64,000 bases of DNA from Carpediemonas membranifera BICM (Eukaryota > Protista > Fornicata): assembly GCA_019828565.1 (NCBI GenBank), contig JAHDYR010000053.1, forward strand, positions 966,272-1,030,271, written 5' to 3'. How positions within the stretch are numbered: position 1 is the stretch's first letter; each line of letters starts with the position of its first letter. The position numbers were made by a program, and so were the translations under genes. Below, piece by piece: positions 13,510 to 64,000 of this stretch. The notes beneath the pieces are model-generated. The model ran no database searches, was not told where the DNA came from, and saw only the letters and a list, made by a program, of their open reading frames with translations.

Positions 13510-14171
13510 TCTGACAAAACGCGCTAAATTACTAATTTATGGCATGGTGGCTTGTGCTTCGACTTCTCCAAGAGGGGGATGCGCTCATGATCGTGCACGT
13601 CGATAGTTGGCTCCAACGCAGTTAATGACGTTTTGAAGCCGAGTTACTGGGATCGGCGCGATGGAGTGAGACATAAACACTTCACGCCCCTGTAGATGCT
13701 GTTTATTGACCAATGACGACATGTTCCGAGGGTCTCCCTGTTTCCAGAGCTCATCAAATTTGTGACCTGTGCTCATGACTTCCGGGGACTTTCGTAAAGA
13801 CCACTGATGGGCACCTCTACATGGGTATAGAGTATTTCGCCTCAAAATTCAAATGCGAGAACTAATCTCGGGGTGTGACTTTTGCGCCATTGTTTCTTGA
13901 CATAAACTGCGTTTCTCCCCAAACGTTCTTTTATTGCACGGAGAGCCGCATCTGCATACTCTGATGGAGGTATCGTGTTCTTAATGGTCATTGCCTCGTC
14001 AGGAGACACAGTTCGGGGTCAGAAATGCCCAGGCCGTGACGCAATCGATAATCGACTGTGGCGAAGTCCATCTCAAAATGGACCGCTCTGTTGGCAAGTG
14101 CGGCTTACTAAGCTAAATCTCTCTCCGTTTCACCCCCTTCGCTCCCAAACAAAGCACAACAGCAAGTATTA

Positions 14172-15302: not shown

Positions 15303-15507
15303 ACGGTGAGATTGAAGTTCAGCGTAAAGATTCCATTTTAACTTTGCTTTTGAGACAAGACAACGGCGGGCCAGCACTGCTGTTCGGCAAGTCCCTCGCG
15401 CTCGCCGCCCTCGCAGACACGCTCAGCGTCCCCTCTGTTGGTGCATCCCGGTGATTTGAGAATCGACTGTGGCCGGGTCTCGGAGCCAACAATCGCCGTG
15501 CACGATC

Positions 15508-18500
15508 ATGAGCGCATCCCCCTCTTGGAGAAGTCGTGGCCACACGGATTCCCTTCAAAAGACCATTAGAATGAACATTGACCCCACTGCGATCTCTTTC
15601 CTGATCGGAAGGAAGGGTTCCACCGTCTCTTCTATTCGTGCCCGTTCTAAGGCTGTCGTATCCTTCCAGGAAGGCGGTATTGCCATCATTCGTGGTTCTG
15701 AGGAGCAGACTCGGCTTGCTAAGAACCTTATCGAAGAGAAGCTTGCGGAGTGGAAGCAAACTGAGCAAGCCCCTTCTGGGTCGATGTCCCGGTGCGCATC
15801 CATGGCCTCCATGGAGACACACCGCCGCATGGCCGACCAGACGGACTCGCACGTCACTGTCGAGTTCCTGCTGACGAAGAAGGCCGAGGAGTGGCTTCGT
15901 TCTCTTGACGGGATTGAGGGAATTGCCAAGACCTGCCGCACCGACGACGGCACTGAGCCCGCAACTGTGTCCGTCTACCACCACGTTCTCCGTGTGCACT
16001 GCCCCACGGAGCGCCTCTACCTCGTCAAGGACAGCCTGCACGCCACCATCACGGCCGCCACGGACGAGAGCCAGCCGTGGCCGACGACCGTCAACGTGAA
16101 GCGCCACACCGCGCACCAGAACCACGGGCCCGACCCGCCGGATGCGGCGCCCCTCGTTCGCGTCGTCCACATCCCGAACGGCTCAGAGCGCGTGCTCATC
16201 GGCCAGAACGGGTCGACCGTCCAGGGCATCCGTGACAAGACCGGCACAACTATCCGCTTCGACAACGGGTGGGCGATCGTCAAGGGCCCGGCCCATGGTG
16301 TCCGCGAGGCCCTCGGCCTCATCGTTGAGAGACTGCAGAGCAACGTCAAGATCGACGGCACGCGTGGCAAGAAGACAGTTACGCTGCCGCTCTACGCCGA
16401 TCGCTACCTCGTCGGCCCACGCGCTGCCACACTTCGCCACATCCGCGAGCAGACCGGCGTTACTCTGCGCGTCGAGGTGACCTCGCAGTCCTCCGAGGCC
16501 CAGGGCGCTCTCGTCCTCGTCGGCCAGCCTGAAAACATCGAGGAGGCCGAGCAGGAGGTCGCTGAACTGCTGTGCGACTTCTCGTACGCCCGCCTGCCCA
16601 TCGTCCAGAGCCTCATCGGCCGCATCATAGGCCGCAACGGCGAGAACCTCAAGCGCATCGTCAAGCTCGCCAACAACGACGTGGCTCTCTTCCTGCCGTC
16701 AGACAGCAGCGGCGACAAGTACGCCGTCATCGCGGGCCCCGTCGATACTGTCGTGATGACGCGCAAGCTCTTCATCTCGCGCATGGCGCTGCTCCAGTCT
16801 CACCGCTGCGCCATGTTCCTCTCGGTGCTGCCCCCGCGCCGCTCTGTCGGCCGCACGCCCCGCGCCGCGTCGTACACGCTCGTGCCCCACGTCGACGACA
16901 ACGTGCTCGTCCCCTCGGCCGAGACCCCCGCCCTGGGCATCGAGACGCCGCGCCAGACCCCTCCCCAGTCGCCGGCCACGCTCTTTGCAGGCCTGTCGTC
17001 GCGCCTCGAGAGCCTCGCCAAGCAGGAGACTGACGGCACGCCTGTCACGCCGACAGCCTCGATGGACAACGTCTACGGCGTCACGCCGTACGGCCACTCC
17101 GTCGCCCACACGCCCACCGGCGCCCAGTCGCCCTACAGCACGCGCCCGCAGCTTGTGCAGTTCACCCTTGACGTCGCCGAGGCTCCCATAGGTGACGCGC
17201 TCTTCGGCTTCTCCGACTCGGAGATGTCTGGCGATGAGGACTTCTCCGACCCCGTCGAGGAGTTCTTCTTCGCTGACCGCACCAGCATCCCCCGAGCCCT
17301 CGCCCCCGGCGAGAAGACCATCTCGCTCGGCGCCTGCTGGTTCGACGCCGCGCTCGCTGGTGCCCGCGCCTACTGGGAGGGCGCTGTCGCGCGTGCCCTG
17401 TCCGGCATGCTCGGCCACGCCGCGGACAGCTCCAACCCGGCCGTCGACGGGCTCGGAAGTCTGCCCGACCTCGAGATCTCGGCTTACGTCGGCCGCAACG
17501 TCATCAACATCATGGCCCAGCCGACGACCAAGCAGACGAAGGTCAACCTCATCGCGGACAACATCCATGACCGCCGCTACGACGCCCGCTTCTGGGCCGG
17601 CGTCTCGGCTGACGCTGCCGACCGCCTCGTCGCGGCCATGCCCCTCCCCGGCGACGTCACTGAGGGCCACCAGGGCTCGTTCCATGTCAGCCTCGTCGCC
17701 GCGGACGCCACTCTCGCCCGCTCCAAGCTGCTGACCGCTAACCTCCCCGAGGGCGACGTCGCGGAGCTGCCCGACACGCTCGTCCTCAACCGCAAGCCCC
17801 TCGGGCCTGCTGACCGTGCCGTGTGGCGCCAGGTTACGATGACGCGCCACGTCGATGGCATTACCGGGCCCGAGCTCTCGCCTGCCGACCTGTCGAGCCT
17901 GGCGCCCGCCGATGGCGCTTCTGAGGTCACCCTTACTGGTGCGTCCGCCCAGATTCTCGTCGCCACGCCCCACCCCGGGGTCGACATCTCCTTCGTCATC
18001 AAGGCGCGCCCCCGCGTCGTCCGCCCGACCGACGGAACCGCCTCGGCCCTCGACAACATCGTCACGGCAGCCGGGACCGTACCCCTGGGCTGTGTCTTCC
18101 AGACGACCGCGCGCTCGGCGTCCCAGTCGGATGAGGCGACGCCCGTGATCGCACTGCCACTGCCAGACATCGATGCCGTTACTATGGCCTCGTTTGACGG
18201 CCTCAGCGACGTTTCCGCGCCCGGTACTGTCTCTGACGAGTTGCTCGCTCGTGCGGCTGTTGGCGAGCAGGAGATTGTGCCCTTCGAGGGTCACGCCACA
18301 CTTCGCCACCGCCGCTTCTTTGTGTCGGGCCAGAACGACCACTGCATCGCGCTGTCTCAGATGGCGATGCCCGCCGGAACCGAGCCCCAGTCGGTCAACG
18401 TCAACATCTTCAAGGCCGCGGCAGGCGACCGCACCAGAACCCCCGCGCCCGCCCTCGTCGCCCCGACCGTGCCCGCTGTCGTTAGCCAGCTGTCCGACCT

Positions 18501-21645: not shown

Positions 21646-23466
21646 ATGATAGACGGCGCTGGCGACGCTATCCTCCAGCAAATCGCCGATAAGGCAAAAC
21701 AACGCTCATACTATACATGCCGCGAGACGCCCAGCCCAGCTATCCACGCGGTGATGCCAAACTATGCTGAGCTCGTCAGTTTCATCAAAGAAATGAAGAG
21801 TGTGACCTTGTACATGCCCCGTTCAAACGTGCTAGAGTCCCTCTTGCCCTCTTCTGCTGTGAATATGATCAAGGCCCTCCCCCGAACCGTTTGGGCGACG
21901 CGTCTCTGGGTGTCCGAGGATGTCTCACAAGCCGCCGTCACCATGCTCCACTCACACCACGACACTGACGACATCCTCGAGTGTGTCCGTAGCGCTATCG
22001 GGAACAACCCTCTCTCCCCTGCGGCAGGCATGCTCGAGGCAGTGAGATCACTTCGTTCGGTTGTGATCAAAGGAACGAAGAGAGCAATGATAGACAGGAA
22101 GAGCAAGCCCATGCTACTGTCCATAGCGTCTAGCTTTAAGATGGACACGGACGACCTCGAGCTCCGGCTGACCAAGACGATGAAAGGCCGTGTGAAGAAG
22201 GGAATGAGCGTCGACGACGCCGAGACCGCCAAGGAGAACCTTGTACGCACATTCGCGGTGAAGGCATTGGAGCTAGTGATGTCAACGAACGAGCACACGA
22301 CGTTCCCCACCAACCAGATCATAACAACCATGGATGACGACGACCTGTGGGCCGCTGAGGTCATCGAGGCGTGGGTCACAGGCAAGCACTGCCCCAGCGA
22401 GGACGGCGGGGTCGACCGCACTGCCCCCGAGATGGGCCTGCCCCCTCTGCTCCCAGTGACGGACGTGGTGGTCGCCGTCACCACCGGGATGGAGCCCCTG
22501 CAGGCGACGTCCATACCAAGGGTCGCAGTATTCACCCCAGAGCCCAGCGAGCATGGCGAGGAGGAGGAGGTCAAGGTCGAGGAGGCCGTGGTGCAGCCGA
22601 CTGAGGTCGAGGCGGTGGAGATCGAGGATCCTGTCAAGCCATCTCCACCAGAGCCGGAGCAAGAACCGGAGCCAGAGGCACCACAGCCTGCACCCGTTCC
22701 GGCCGACGAGCCCGAGCCCACACTGGCGGGCACCATGGATCCCGTGCCTGTGGCCGACCTTGAGGAGGCCACACCGCAGACACATGCCCCTCCCGTTCCT
22801 GAGCCCGAGGTCACCCCGGCCATCCCTGGGCCGCAGACACCTGCGACCCCCAGCACCTCGACGCCCCAGCAGCGCATGGCCGAGTTGAGATCATCGCTCG
22901 GCAAACCCCCAGCGTCGCCGATGTCCCGACTGCTCCGTGGCCGCAGGAGTCCGCGGGTTGAATCTGACTCCTTCGACCGCAACAAGGTGACGGAGCGAGC
23001 CCGGCGATTCCGGCAGCAGGTGGAGGTCCTTCTCAAGGAGCAACCGCCTGCCCCAGTGATCTCCCAGTCGCCCTCGTACGTCATACTGAACCAGTACCTC
23101 GACTCGATCAAGCGAGACGAGCCCGTCGGCAGCGTCTCGCCACCCGACTCACCCAACCCCTCCCTCAGCCGCCCGATCCAAACCCTGGCGGCACATGCCA
23201 CTGTTGGCCGACTCGCGCTGTATCGCCACTTCGACGAGAATGCTGTGCACGACACTGCCGAGCTGCTCGGCCTTGACACCTTGCCCGCTGACCTCCCGAA
23301 CGAGCTCTACCCCGCTGCCCCCGTGACTGTTCAAGGAGAGCCGTTCCATGAGGTCCAGGGCCGGGTCATGCGGCAGTTGGTGGATCCAACGGCCATATCA
23401 GATCTGGTGGATATCGGATCCAGATACTGCGATGACAGGATCTTGGGAAGATATGGCGCAGATTGA
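21646..23466 (+). CDS. Hypothetical protein with Pro/Glu-rich linker; 3' end interrupted by the 330-bp element (pre-insertion ORF would end at 23919)
   Basis: 606-aa ORF whose last ~18 codons and stop come from the inserted repeat. The reconstructed empty site continues in frame for 59 codons. Confidence 0.7.
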   Translation: MIDGAGDAILQQIADKAKQRSYYTCRETPSPAIHAVMPNYAELVSFIKEMKSVTLYMPRSNVLESLLPSSAVNMIKALPRTVWATRLWVSEDVSQAAVTMLHSHHDTDDILECVRSAIGNNPLSPAAGMLEAVRSLRSVVIKGTKRAMIDRKSKPMLLSIASSFKMDTDDLELRLTKTMKGRVKKGMSVDDAETAKENLVRTFAVKALELVMSTNEHTTFPTNQIITTMDDDDLWAAEVIEAWVTGKHCPSEDGGVDRTAPEMGLPPLLPVTDVVVAVTTGMEPLQATSIPRVAVFTPEPSEHGEEEEVKVEEAVVQPTEVEAVEIEDPVKPSPPEPEQEPEPEAPQPAPVPADEPEPTLAGTMDPVPVADLEEATPQTHAPPVPEPEVTPAIPGPQTPATPSTSTPQQRMAELRSSLGKPPASPMSRLLRGRRSPRVESDSFDRNKVTERARRFRQQVEVLLKEQPPAPVISQSPSYVILNQYLDSIKRDEPVGSVSPPDSPNPSLSRPIQTLAAHATVGRLALYRHFDENAVHDTAELLGLDTLPADLPNELYPAAPVTVQGEPFHEVQGRVMRQLVDPTAISDLVDIGSRYCDDRILGRYGAD

Positions 23467-23738
23467 GTGTAATATATGCGATTTAGGATAAATGTATCTC
23501 CCGTCTCTTTCTCGCGGATGAATCTTTCTTTGGTTCGGATCAGGTTGAGGTCGATTCTTCTGTTCGATACAGCCGGCATGGAAGAAAATGAAGTTGCAGA
23601 GGTTTCTAAATAGTACTTCAAGGTATCCCTATCCCATGAATAGCGACATAGCTGTGCAGTATGAATGACATTCAGAGGAATGAGGCTGTGTGAGATTGTT
23701 GTGCAATGATGTGTTGCGCTTGCCCAAGGCCACACGAC
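23409..23738. mobile_element. 330-bp non-autonomous element, copy 1, 3-bp TSD GGT
   Basis: GGATATCGG...CCACACGAC flanked by GGT at 23406-23408 and 23739-23741. 328/330 identical to 59477-59806. Confidence 0.9.
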
Positions 23739-24777
23739 GGTAGCGCTACTGGAGCATACCACTGGGCTCAGCATGGCAGGGTTCGTTCAGACTCTTTTCA
23801 AACTGTATAGACAGGGCTTTCAAGCCGGCGACCAACTAAGGCGCAGCCAAGATTTTCACCAGTCATCGCGCAGACAAGTTGTATTACTACTGAGCCAATG
23901 CATGAGTCCTGTGAAATGACACTCTTAGCTACTTATCACTTTGACTCGGCACAGTCATGCCCTTCACAACAACCATCAGAGAAAAACATGGGAAACGCCA
24001 ACGGAAATGGCAATTCGTTTCTGCCAACCATTGGTCCAGGCCACTTTAGCGAGAACACGCAGATGCAAACCGACGAGTAATATGCAGAAGTGGCAGCGGC
24101 GTTCATGATCACAGGTATCGCTGGGCCGTAAATGAAAAGCATGGTTTCATTCATTGATAGCGTATATGGAGATGAGGAGCACAAACTCGTTCGTTTCTCG
24201 TGAGTGCTTCGCAGAATTGTCATCGGTGGAGAACACAAACTACAAGCAGGGGCCCGTGGCGCCATCAGACGCTGCCATCAGACACGGGCGACTTGCCCCA
24301 TGGGCGCTACGTCAGTTTTGCTCTTCTGTTGAGGCTGGCAGATGTTGCAAGACATTACGAAATTCTCAGCCACACAATCTAGACAATCTAGAAGTGCCAT
24401 CAGTGGTCTATTGACTGAACGAGGGTGCTCTGATCACTAGTATTCAACTCAATCGACAAAAATAAACGTTCAAAACGGCTTCATCTGTCATTTAGCTATC
24501 GATTGCTCTAGAACCTGCCAATGCTAAGGGACTTAATGCTGTCAGTGCCCGGAGTGACGTCGGGGTACTCGTTATCACTCTCAGACTCGTTTCCATATCC
24601 GCCAATGCCGCCGTTTCCCATCTTCACTTTGTTTGTGGTGTCTTGCGCGGTCAACGATTGCTCTCCGATCCGACTGCAACCCGAGTCAAATGCCTCAGGA
24701 CCCTCGCGCCATCAGTGCCCTTCATCACAGCCAGCACAGTAAATCAAAGAATTATGTTGAGATGTGGGTTTATTCGC

Positions 24778-59354: not shown

Positions 59355-59476
59355 ATGAGGTGCGGACGATTGTACTTATCTCAGCCCATCATCGCAGCTT
59401 TGTTAAAAGACGGCAGCCGTGATGGCCATTAGGCCGGTCAGGTGGGTTGGGGGCGAAGCGTTGGATTTTCAGGCCA

Positions 59477-59806
59477 GGATATCGGATCCAGATACTGCGA
59501 TGACATGATCTTGGGAAGATATGGCGCAGATTGAGTGTAATATATGCGATTTAGGATAAATGTATCTCCCGTCTCTTTCTCGCGGATGAATCTTTCTTTG
59601 GTTCGGATCAGGTTGAGGTCGATTCTTCTGTTCGATACAGCCGGCATGGAAGAAAATGAAGTTGCAGAGGTTTCTAAATAGTACTTCAAGGTATCCCTAT
59701 CCCATGAATAGCGACATAGCTGTGCAGTATGAATGACATTCAGAGGAATGAGGCTGTGTGAGATTGTTGTGCAATGATGTGTTGCGCTTGTCCAAGGCCA
59801 CACGAC
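59477..59806. mobile_element. 330-bp non-autonomous element, copy 2, 3-bp TSD CCA
   Basis: GGATATCGG...CCACACGAC flanked by CCA at 59474-59476 and 59807-59809. Same orientation as copy 1. Confidence 0.9.
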
Positions 59807-59957
59807 CCAGGGTTAGCCCCCCTCTGAGCCGGGCTTCCTGGCAACTAGCCTCTCCGCTGGCTGCAACCCCTCCGACAGGGTCAACCATAAATCAATTACA
59901 TGATCGATTTGTCAAATGTATCTGCTGACGTCAGCAACCGAAAGAACAACAGAACAG

Positions 59958-62476: not shown

Positions 62477-64000
62477 ATGCTTGCACGATCAAGCACCTTA
62501 GCAGTACAAAACCGCCACGGAAATGGTCCTCAGCCAGCGAAAAGCGGCGAGGATTCCGTCAGTGAGCTGAAAGAACAGATCGCTGGGTTCACCCGGCAAA
62601 TACGAGAACTTGTGGACAGTAATAGCAGCCTGAAGTCACAGCTGTACAGTGCAGAGGTAGACCAGAGCCTCCACAAGATTGAAGTGGCTGCACTGAAGAA
62701 AGAGAACAGCAAGTTGGCGTCTGATAACGCAACCTTGCAGGAGAGCCGCAGCGACATGGAAGCGGAGACCTACGCCCTCAAGGCCCAACTGGAGCAGCTC
62801 GCCGAGGAGCGGGACGAGGCCAAGGTCGCCATGGCCCGCAGTGCAAAGAGCTTAAGACGAGAGAGCTCGGCAAAGCTGTCGAGCGAGCAGGCAATTGGTG
62901 ACTATATCGCGCGCATCACGGCGCTCGAGGCTGAGCTCAAGGCGCGCGACGAGGACGACGCGAACACCCGCGCCAGCAACGCGAAGAAGCTCGCCGAGGT
63001 CGACAACCGCACCGCGCAGCTCGACGGCACCATCGCCGAGCTCGAGGCGAAGCTCGCCGAGTCGACCCGCGAGGCTGAGACCCTCCGCGCCGAGGTCGCG
63101 AAGTACAGCGAGCGCGAGGCCGTTTGTAGCGGAGAGCGCGGCGCCGACGAGATGCAGGCCGAGATCGAGCGCCTGCGCACGAGCTTGAACACCAGTGAAA
63201 ACGCCGCAGCGGAGAAGATCGCGGCGCTTCAGCACGAGATCGAGCTCCACGACCGCGACGAGCCGAAGATCGCCGCCCGCATCGCAGAGCTTGAGGCTGC
63301 CGTCGCCAACTCCCAGAGCGAGCTTGACCAGACGCGCGACGAGCTTGAAGACGTTCGCGCCACCCGCGCCGACATCAGCGCCGCCTCGCTGGCCGACCTG
63401 AAAACTCAGCTCGAGTCGGCCCAGGCCGAGCGCGACCAGGCGAAGATCGACGCTAATGTTGCCCGTTCGTCGCTGAAGCAGTACGGCTCCGACGAGGAAT
63501 CCACCAAGAAGACGATCGACGACTATGTCGCGCGCATCACGGCGCTCGAGGCTGAGCTCAAGGCGCGCGACGAGGACGACGCGAACACCCGCGCCAGCAA
63601 CGCGAAGAAGCTCGCCGAGGTCGACAACCGCACCGCGCAGCTCGACGGCACCATCGCCGAGCTCGAGGCGAAGCTCGCCGAGTCGACCCGCGAGGCTGAG
63701 ACCCTCCGCGCCGAGGTCGCGAAGTACAGCGAGCGCGAGGCCGTTTGTAGCGGAGAGCGCGGCGCCGACGAGATGCAGGCCGAGATCGAGCGCCTGCGCA
63801 CGAGCTTGAACACCAGTGAAAACGCCGCAGCGGAGAAGATCGCGGCGCTTCAGCACGAGATCGAGCTCCACGACCGCGACGAGCCGAAGATCGCCGCCCG
63901 CATCGCAGAGCTTGAGGCTGCCGTCGCCAACTCCCAGAGCGAGCTTGACCAGACGCGCGACGAGCTTGAAGACGTTCGCGCCACCCGCGCCGACATCAGC
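62477..64000 (+). CDS. Coiled-coil protein with 207-aa tandem repeats; runs off the window end
   Basis: Open frame from ATG 62477 (MLARSS...SVSELKEQI...DYIARITALEAELKAR...) to the end of the window. It is absent from the ORF track, presumably because it has no stop in the window. Confidence 0.8.
   Translation, partial: MLARSSTLAVQNRHGNGPQPAKSGEDSVSELKEQIAGFTRQIRELVDSNSSLKSQLYSAEVDQSLHKIEVAALKKENSKLASDNATLQESRSDMEAETYALKAQLEQLAEERDEAKVAMARSAKSLRRESSAKLSSEQAIGDYIARITALEAELKARDEDDANTRASNAKKLAEVDNRTAQLDGTIAELEAKLAESTREAETLRAEVAKYSEREAVCSGERGADEMQAEIERLRTSLNTSENAAAEKIAALQHEIELHDRDEPKIAARIAELEAAVANSQSELDQTRDELEDVRATRADISAASLADLKTQLESAQAERDQAKIDANVARSSLKQYGSDEESTKKTIDDYVARITALEAELKARDEDDANTRASNAKKLAEVDNRTAQLDGTIAELEAKLAESTREAETLRAEVAKYSEREAVCSGERGADEMQAEIERLRTSLNTSENAAAEKIAALQHEIELHDRDEPKIAARIAELEAAVANSQSELDQTRDELEDVRATRADIS
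62900..64000 (+). repeat. Tandem repeat, 621-bp period, near-identical units (at least 1.8 copies visible)
   Basis: GACTATATCGCGCGCATC at 62900 recurs as GACTATGTCGCGCGCATC at 63521, and the following sequence appears identical. Confidence 0.95.

Follow-up and report, generated by a model that had tools for sequence, protein, structure and literature searches.

What kind of mobile element inserts with precise ends and a 3-bp target duplication and carries no terminal inverted repeats (TIRs), and by what route could it have moved? The question is raised by a 64,000-nucleotide stretch of the genome of the fornicate protist Carpediemonas membranifera BICM (GenBank assembly GCA_019828565.1, contig JAHDYR010000053.1, positions 966,272 to 1,030,271 of the forward strand; hereafter the window, whose coordinates are used throughout unless another contig or element is named). 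The window holds two copies of a 330-bp element on the plus strand, copy A at 23409-23738, within the 3' end of an orphan host open reading frame (ORF), and copy B at 59477-59806, between genes. We tentatively read the element as a short, non-coding, non-autonomous DNA-level mobile element whose ends are asymmetric and which hopped once, locally; we prefer this reading without holding it to be probable.

Both insertions are real, with defined ends and target duplications. The copies differ at 2 of 330 positions (G/T at 23438 and C/T at 23723), which indicates that the insertion event is recent, and their identity breaks off sharply at both edges, where the adjoining bases are T in copy A and A in copy B on the left (position -1) and G and C, respectively, on the right (position +1). 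An exact 3-bp duplication directly adjoins each copy, and its sequence differs between the two sites, being GGT for copy A (23406-23408 and 23739-23741) and CCA for copy B (59474-59476 and 59807-59809). Two such adjoining matches would be expected by chance with a probability of about (1/64)^2 = 2e-4. The element starts with GGATATC and finishes with CACACGAC; its ends, GGATATCGG and CCACACGAC, have only the terminal G/C in common, and their complementarity (4-5 of 16 bases) is at chance level. A repeat search within the element revealed neither inverted nor direct repeats at its termini, and the sole internal repeat is a 14-nt pair with 79% identity. At 0.448, the G+C content (GC) of the element lies below the 0.53-0.69 of the surrounding 2-kb host windows. 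In all of these respects, namely two 330-bp copies with two mismatches, different 3-bp duplications, absence of TIRs and greater AT-richness than the host, the coordinates, edges, repeat search and composition bear out an earlier note on this DNA.

The boundaries also allow another possible parse, in which the first two bases of the element are counted as target; this shortens the element to 328 bp, lengthens the duplication to 5 bp and makes the ends AT...AC, which are no more canonical than GG...AC. Copy B would then have a perfect duplication (CCAGG/CCAGG, the right-hand CCA being extended to 5 bp), and copy A one matching at four of five positions (GGTGG/GGTAG). The 5-bp parse needs GG in both targets and a later mutation of one duplication, and a simple likelihood estimate puts it about 25-fold behind the 3-bp parse. 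The left flank of copy A (23392-23408, CCATATCAGATCTGGT) resembles the first 16 nt of the element (23409-23424) at 10 of 16 positions, with a single-comparison P of about 0.002, and the left flank of copy B matches the left end of the element at 8 of 14 positions at a 2-nt offset. This similarity is marginal once multiple comparisons are allowed for, and we make no claim for it.

To place the element, we searched the 24.2-Mb assembly (69 contigs) for relatives. The earlier note had proposed a genome-wide BLAST search for more or longer copies, and that search returned the two copies alone: full-length BLAST revealed no third copy in the assembly, neither terminal 70 bp occurs elsewhere in it, a six-frame search with the peptide of the minus strand (E ≤ 10) recovered only the two known copies, and a profile model built from both copies added no further assembly match. 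With only two copies there is neither a longer parent, nor a partner that shares an end, nor a third copy by which end precision or frame conservation could be tested. Outside the assembly, blastn against plasmids and phages gave no match to the element, exact patterns of its ends and interior were absent from viral and prokaryotic contigs, and the element pattern likewise matched nothing in viral and prokaryotic (bacterial, archaeal) contigs. A 10-residue match in a metagenome contig (L011) was an artefact created by the search pattern itself. The left end carries GATATC and GGATCC sites, as a vector polylinker might, yet no plasmid matched, and we rejected this origin as well.

Two features of the insertions argue for movement as DNA. 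The flanking triplets differ and each site shows a net gain of 3 bp, which requires staggered cleavage followed by fill-in and excludes conservative recombination. In each case the target was cut with a stagger of three bases, and filling of the gaps duplicated GGT around copy A and CCA around copy B. In addition, the copies share one orientation and are 36,068 bp apart, and random placement of two copies 36 kb apart in one orientation within 24.2 Mb has a probability of about 0.003. Linked reinsertion is typical of DNA-level transposition, so this close linkage is a positive argument for a local hop, in which the element would have moved as DNA between two sites on the same chromosome. It would have depended on an enzyme acting in trans, with neither that enzyme nor a parent element now recognizable in the assembly, and the stop-free minus strand described below would be a by-product, arising by chance or as a relic of the source sequence. 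The visible outcome is the truncation of an orphan host ORF at one site and, at the other, 330 bp of inserted DNA upstream of Hsp90. The element shows no coding signal, RNA structure, tRNA-like head or Rfam family, and we count this in favor of a non-coding DNA-level element. Classical non-homologous end joining (NHEJ) with Ku/DNA-PKcs has been reported absent from C. membranifera, whose genome is reported as probably haploid (PMC8516963), and the reported absence speaks against a free fragment captured by blunt joining.

Several observations weigh against a locally hopping DNA element. To our knowledge, eukaryotic DDE transposons with 3-bp duplications carry TIRs, and the element does not. 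The Harbinger DDE transposase (DDE_Tnp_4, PF13359) had no match in the assembly, in a search whose control was positive in 1 of 14 genomes, and no serine recombinase was detected there. Neither terminal 20-23 nt recurs in the assembly with up to three mismatches, and two copies are too few for a consensus of targets or of ends. The linkage itself is subject to ascertainment, since only pairs within a single 64-kb window were visible when the element was first noticed. A search of the assembly for the CACTA transposase (Transposase_21) also gave no match, but its control was silent everywhere, so that this result is uninformative on absence. That the element represents an undescribed kind of eukaryotic DNA transposon, with asymmetric non-inverted ends, a 3-bp stagger and an enzyme outside the known 3-bp-duplication superfamilies, is in our estimate very unlikely; its mover would possibly be an uncharacterized transposase of this protist, which is rich in transposable elements.

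The minus strand of the element is stop-free over 110 codons from the first base to the last, as the earlier note had observed, and our read-through of the frames agrees; stops occur in all five other frames. Such an open frame turns up in 2.3% of dinucleotide shuffles of the element, and one in three lengths would be a multiple of three by chance. GC at the first, second and third codon positions of the open frame is flat (0.42/0.45/0.47, vs. 0.59/0.44/0.76 in host genes), its codon-usage score is slightly above that of the other frames and well under that of host genes, and both substitutions between the copies fall at first codon positions and are nonsynonymous (Leu/Met and Ala/Thr). The 110-codon peptide had no match in Pfam, none in the PDB and none in a word-indexed protein search. 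Among 1.84 billion protein representatives, a single match was obtained, to an 826-amino acid protein with nine tandem repeats, and we judged it spurious; its apparent E-value is inflated because a short ERFI..KET.DT motif match was counted across all nine repeats. Recognition of the peptide in the ESM Atlas (1269) is in the range of shuffled sequences and below the 2300 reached by 91% of real families, and its AlphaFold single-sequence model has a mean predicted local distance difference test score (pLDDT) of 52. The frame is thus probably not coding, and its best explanation is chance or a remnant of the sequence from which the element arose.

These data also bear on the idea of a frame-preserving cassette, a mobile module of 110 or 111 codons carried inside host proteins; the earlier note had pointed out that a sense in-frame insertion would add 111 residues and leave the host protein unbroken. 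The uninterrupted minus strand, its rarity among shuffles and the fact that 330+3 is a multiple of three would all suit such a module. Against it stand the flat codon-position GC with no host codon bias, the two nonsynonymous changes, the absence of Pfam and PDB matches and of any credible homologue, the low ESM recognition and pLDDT, and the location of the copies, neither of which is a sense in-frame insertion, as had already been seen: the open frame of copy A runs antisense to a host ORF that the insertion truncates, and copy B is intergenic. We regard a coding cassette as barely credible, and the idea is not supported.

Other routes of insertion have to be weighed against movement as DNA, and the mobile-element background of the genome offers several, with at least 1519 reverse-transcriptase, at least 716 rve-integrase and at least 234 tyrosine-recombinase candidate matches in the assembly. 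The heavy retroelement load, together with a length of 330 bp, which is ordinary for a long terminal repeat (LTR), and the 5-bp duplication of the alternative parse, would suit a solo LTR or other retroelement terminal repeat, inserted by an integrase and then reduced by LTR-LTR recombination at both sites. The ends are nevertheless GG...AC (or AT...AC in the 5-bp parse) and not TG...CA, and the parse that supplies the duplication requires one of its copies to have mutated and carries the 25-fold penalty that we estimated above. The assembly holds no full-length or other copy and no pair flanking gag/pol, so that a solo terminal repeat, as suggested in the earlier note, would have no larger element there to belong to; two independent solo formations and the loss of all full copies would have to fit within 0.6% divergence. 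Against the resident 43-46-bp mini-LTR, the element scores lower than shuffled sequences do on average, and the 36-kb linkage is left unaccounted for. Taken together, we consider a solo LTR unlikely. The same abundance of reverse-transcriptase genes would also serve a retrocopy resembling a short interspersed nuclear element (SINE), in which a short RNA was copied into the target sites by target-primed reverse transcription using a resident reverse transcriptase, and the precise ends, the target duplications and the absence of inverted repeats speak for this route. Neither strand, however, has a poly-A or repeat tail, the head is not tRNA-like, 5S-like or 7SL-like, no Rfam family matches and ARAGORN finds no tRNA; the 3' 70 nt are shared, on either strand, with no long interspersed nuclear element (LINE) or other sequence in the assembly, a source gene is absent from the assembly as a third copy, and RNA folding of both strands is weaker than in shuffles. 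Linkage is again not accounted for, and we hold a retrocopy to be quite unlikely.

An orphan sequence with a foreign-looking GC (0.45 vs. about 0.57) and no parent in the assembly might also be a free linear DNA or cDNA fragment of viral, episomal or extrachromosomal origin, the same fragment having been captured twice at staggered breaks. The fragment would then have to be taken up twice with the same ends, each time at a break with a 3-nt overhang. Clean duplications are not a product of alternative end joining, which is marked by microhomology and deletions. The canonical NHEJ factors are those reported absent (PMC8516963), and no credible match was found in the viral, phage, plasmid, bacterial, archaeal or metagenome sequences searched; we therefore rate fragment capture as highly improbable. 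The tyrosine recombinases suggest yet another source, namely that the element is a passenger of DIRS/Ngaro/Crypton-like elements and integrated as a circle at a 3-bp junction. DIRS-type elements are the one known group in which an element without TIRs lies between two trinucleotides; these are not a true duplication, and TIRs are not required (PMC3266345, PMC7192593). Their conservative mechanism needs one and the same triplet at the junction of the circle and in the target, which all copies should then share, whereas here the triplets are GGT and CCA, with a true 3-bp gain at both sites. The element also has no inverted terminal repeats or internal complementary regions (ITR/ICR) and no split direct repeats. 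The differing triplets largely refute a passenger of this type, and the chance that it applies is remote.

The resident tyrosine-recombinase elements have features of their own. In one family (L024-L029), whose copies are more than 99% identical, a 46-nt direct repeat occurs twice near the 3' end (positions 2353-2398 and 2668-2713 of L024); the L029 copy terminates at the first of these repeats and the other family members at the second. This arrangement is reminiscent of split direct repeats, or of a nested mini-LTR unit. On contig C6, a dense cluster of tyrosine-recombinase matches from several families extends over about 75 kb (about 446-522 kb), which suggests a nest of such elements and perhaps a centromere-like region.

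Returning to a short non-autonomous element moved as DNA, comparison with described classes shows that it matches none of the standard ones, since it does not show the features by which Harbinger, CACTA, LTR, DIRS/Crypton, SINE, Helitron and introner elements are defined. With PIF/Harbinger and CACTA (EnSpm) elements resembling miniature inverted-repeat transposable elements, it shares a short non-coding sequence, a 3-bp duplication, copies of low divergence and a location in or near genes, and differs from both in its lack of TIRs. Harbinger target duplications show a preference for TWA; their 3-bp length agrees with that found here, but GGT and CCA are not TWA, and the CACTA...TAGTG termini of CACTA/EnSpm elements are likewise missing. 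Solo LTRs of the Ty3/gypsy type resemble the element in size range, direct orientation, possession of an own duplication and insertion near gene ends; a duplication of 4-6 bp would be expected of them, whereas the best parse here gives 3 bp and the alternative 5 bp, and the ends (not TG...CA) and the lack of a full-length relative set the element apart. The DIRS order has short derivatives, which include SIRE, the VIPER-related short element. These elements and the present one have in common a trinucleotide at both ends and no need of TIRs, and differ in that the triplets here vary between copies and are true duplications. Helitrons have 5'-TC...CTRR-3' ends, insert between an A and a T and make no duplication, whereas the element has other ends and a 3-bp duplication. 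An intein or in-frame cassette would be a sense in-frame insertion with a conserved, selected peptide, both of which are absent here. The earlier description of a "recently active element of unknown class" thus stands as to its recency and its poor fit to any standard class, whereas "active" overstates one or at most two insertion events represented by two copies.

At the site of copy A, the insertion breaks a plus-strand host ORF (21646-23466) annotated as protein P0002 (606 amino acids), the last 19 residues and stop codon of which are derived from the element. The ORF has host-like codon bias (GC3 0.74), and no homologue of P0002 was found in the protein collection searched. Removal of the element and one GGT would extend its frame to 646 amino acids, the probable former 3' end being the plus-strand segment at 23743-23919 (58 codons plus stop), which is the only open frame there. 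Copy A likely truncated the real C-terminus of the host protein; this is likely and not proven because the 58 restored codons show weak codon bias (GC3 0.52). Introner-type transposons generate spliceosomal introns, and the element shares with them a short non-autonomous insertion within a gene and a short duplication. An intron at copy A was rejected: no GT...AG pair would excise element and duplication precisely or in frame, and none of the four registers that remove exactly 333 nt is bounded by GT...AG; the closest pair (GT at 23407 and AG at 23743) spans 337 nt, and the annotated protein ends inside the element instead. Copy B begins 122 bp past the stop codon of an RCC1-like ORF, and its end is 109 bp short of the Hsp90 ATG. 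Both copies are oriented as their flanking genes are.

The present value of these observations is local, in that they describe a very recent insertion truncating an annotated orphan protein and a second insertion just upstream of Hsp90, and remove the idea of an in-frame cassette. If an enzyme were found that mobilizes elements without TIRs and duplicates a constant 3 bp, it would add a new transposition chemistry to the eukaryotic catalogue, and this chemistry would come from Fornicata, a lineage whose DNA-processing machinery has already been reported as unusual. Two copies without relatives cannot bear this larger claim; what the window holds is a modest curiosity, a real and very young orphan insertion sequence in two copies, with no enzyme and no relatives.

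Two further repeats lie in the window. A 55-nt inverted repeat (13560-13614 and 15482-15536; 96% complementary) brackets an ornithine decarboxylase gene that had been flagged at the first reading of the window as a probable lateral transfer. Its arms are 1867 nt apart and a flanking duplication is not evident; the repeat could mark the two termini of a carrier element, or form a hairpin with a regulatory role. Just beyond its right arm, at 15537-15546, the 9-mer GGCCACACG from the right end of the 330-bp element recurs, probably by coincidence (about 0.5 chance matches would be expected in 64 kb). Toward the end of the window, the minus-strand ORF at 62852-63871 contains a tandem-type duplication of 300 nt (62879-63178 and 63500-63799) with 97% identity and a spacing of 621 nt.

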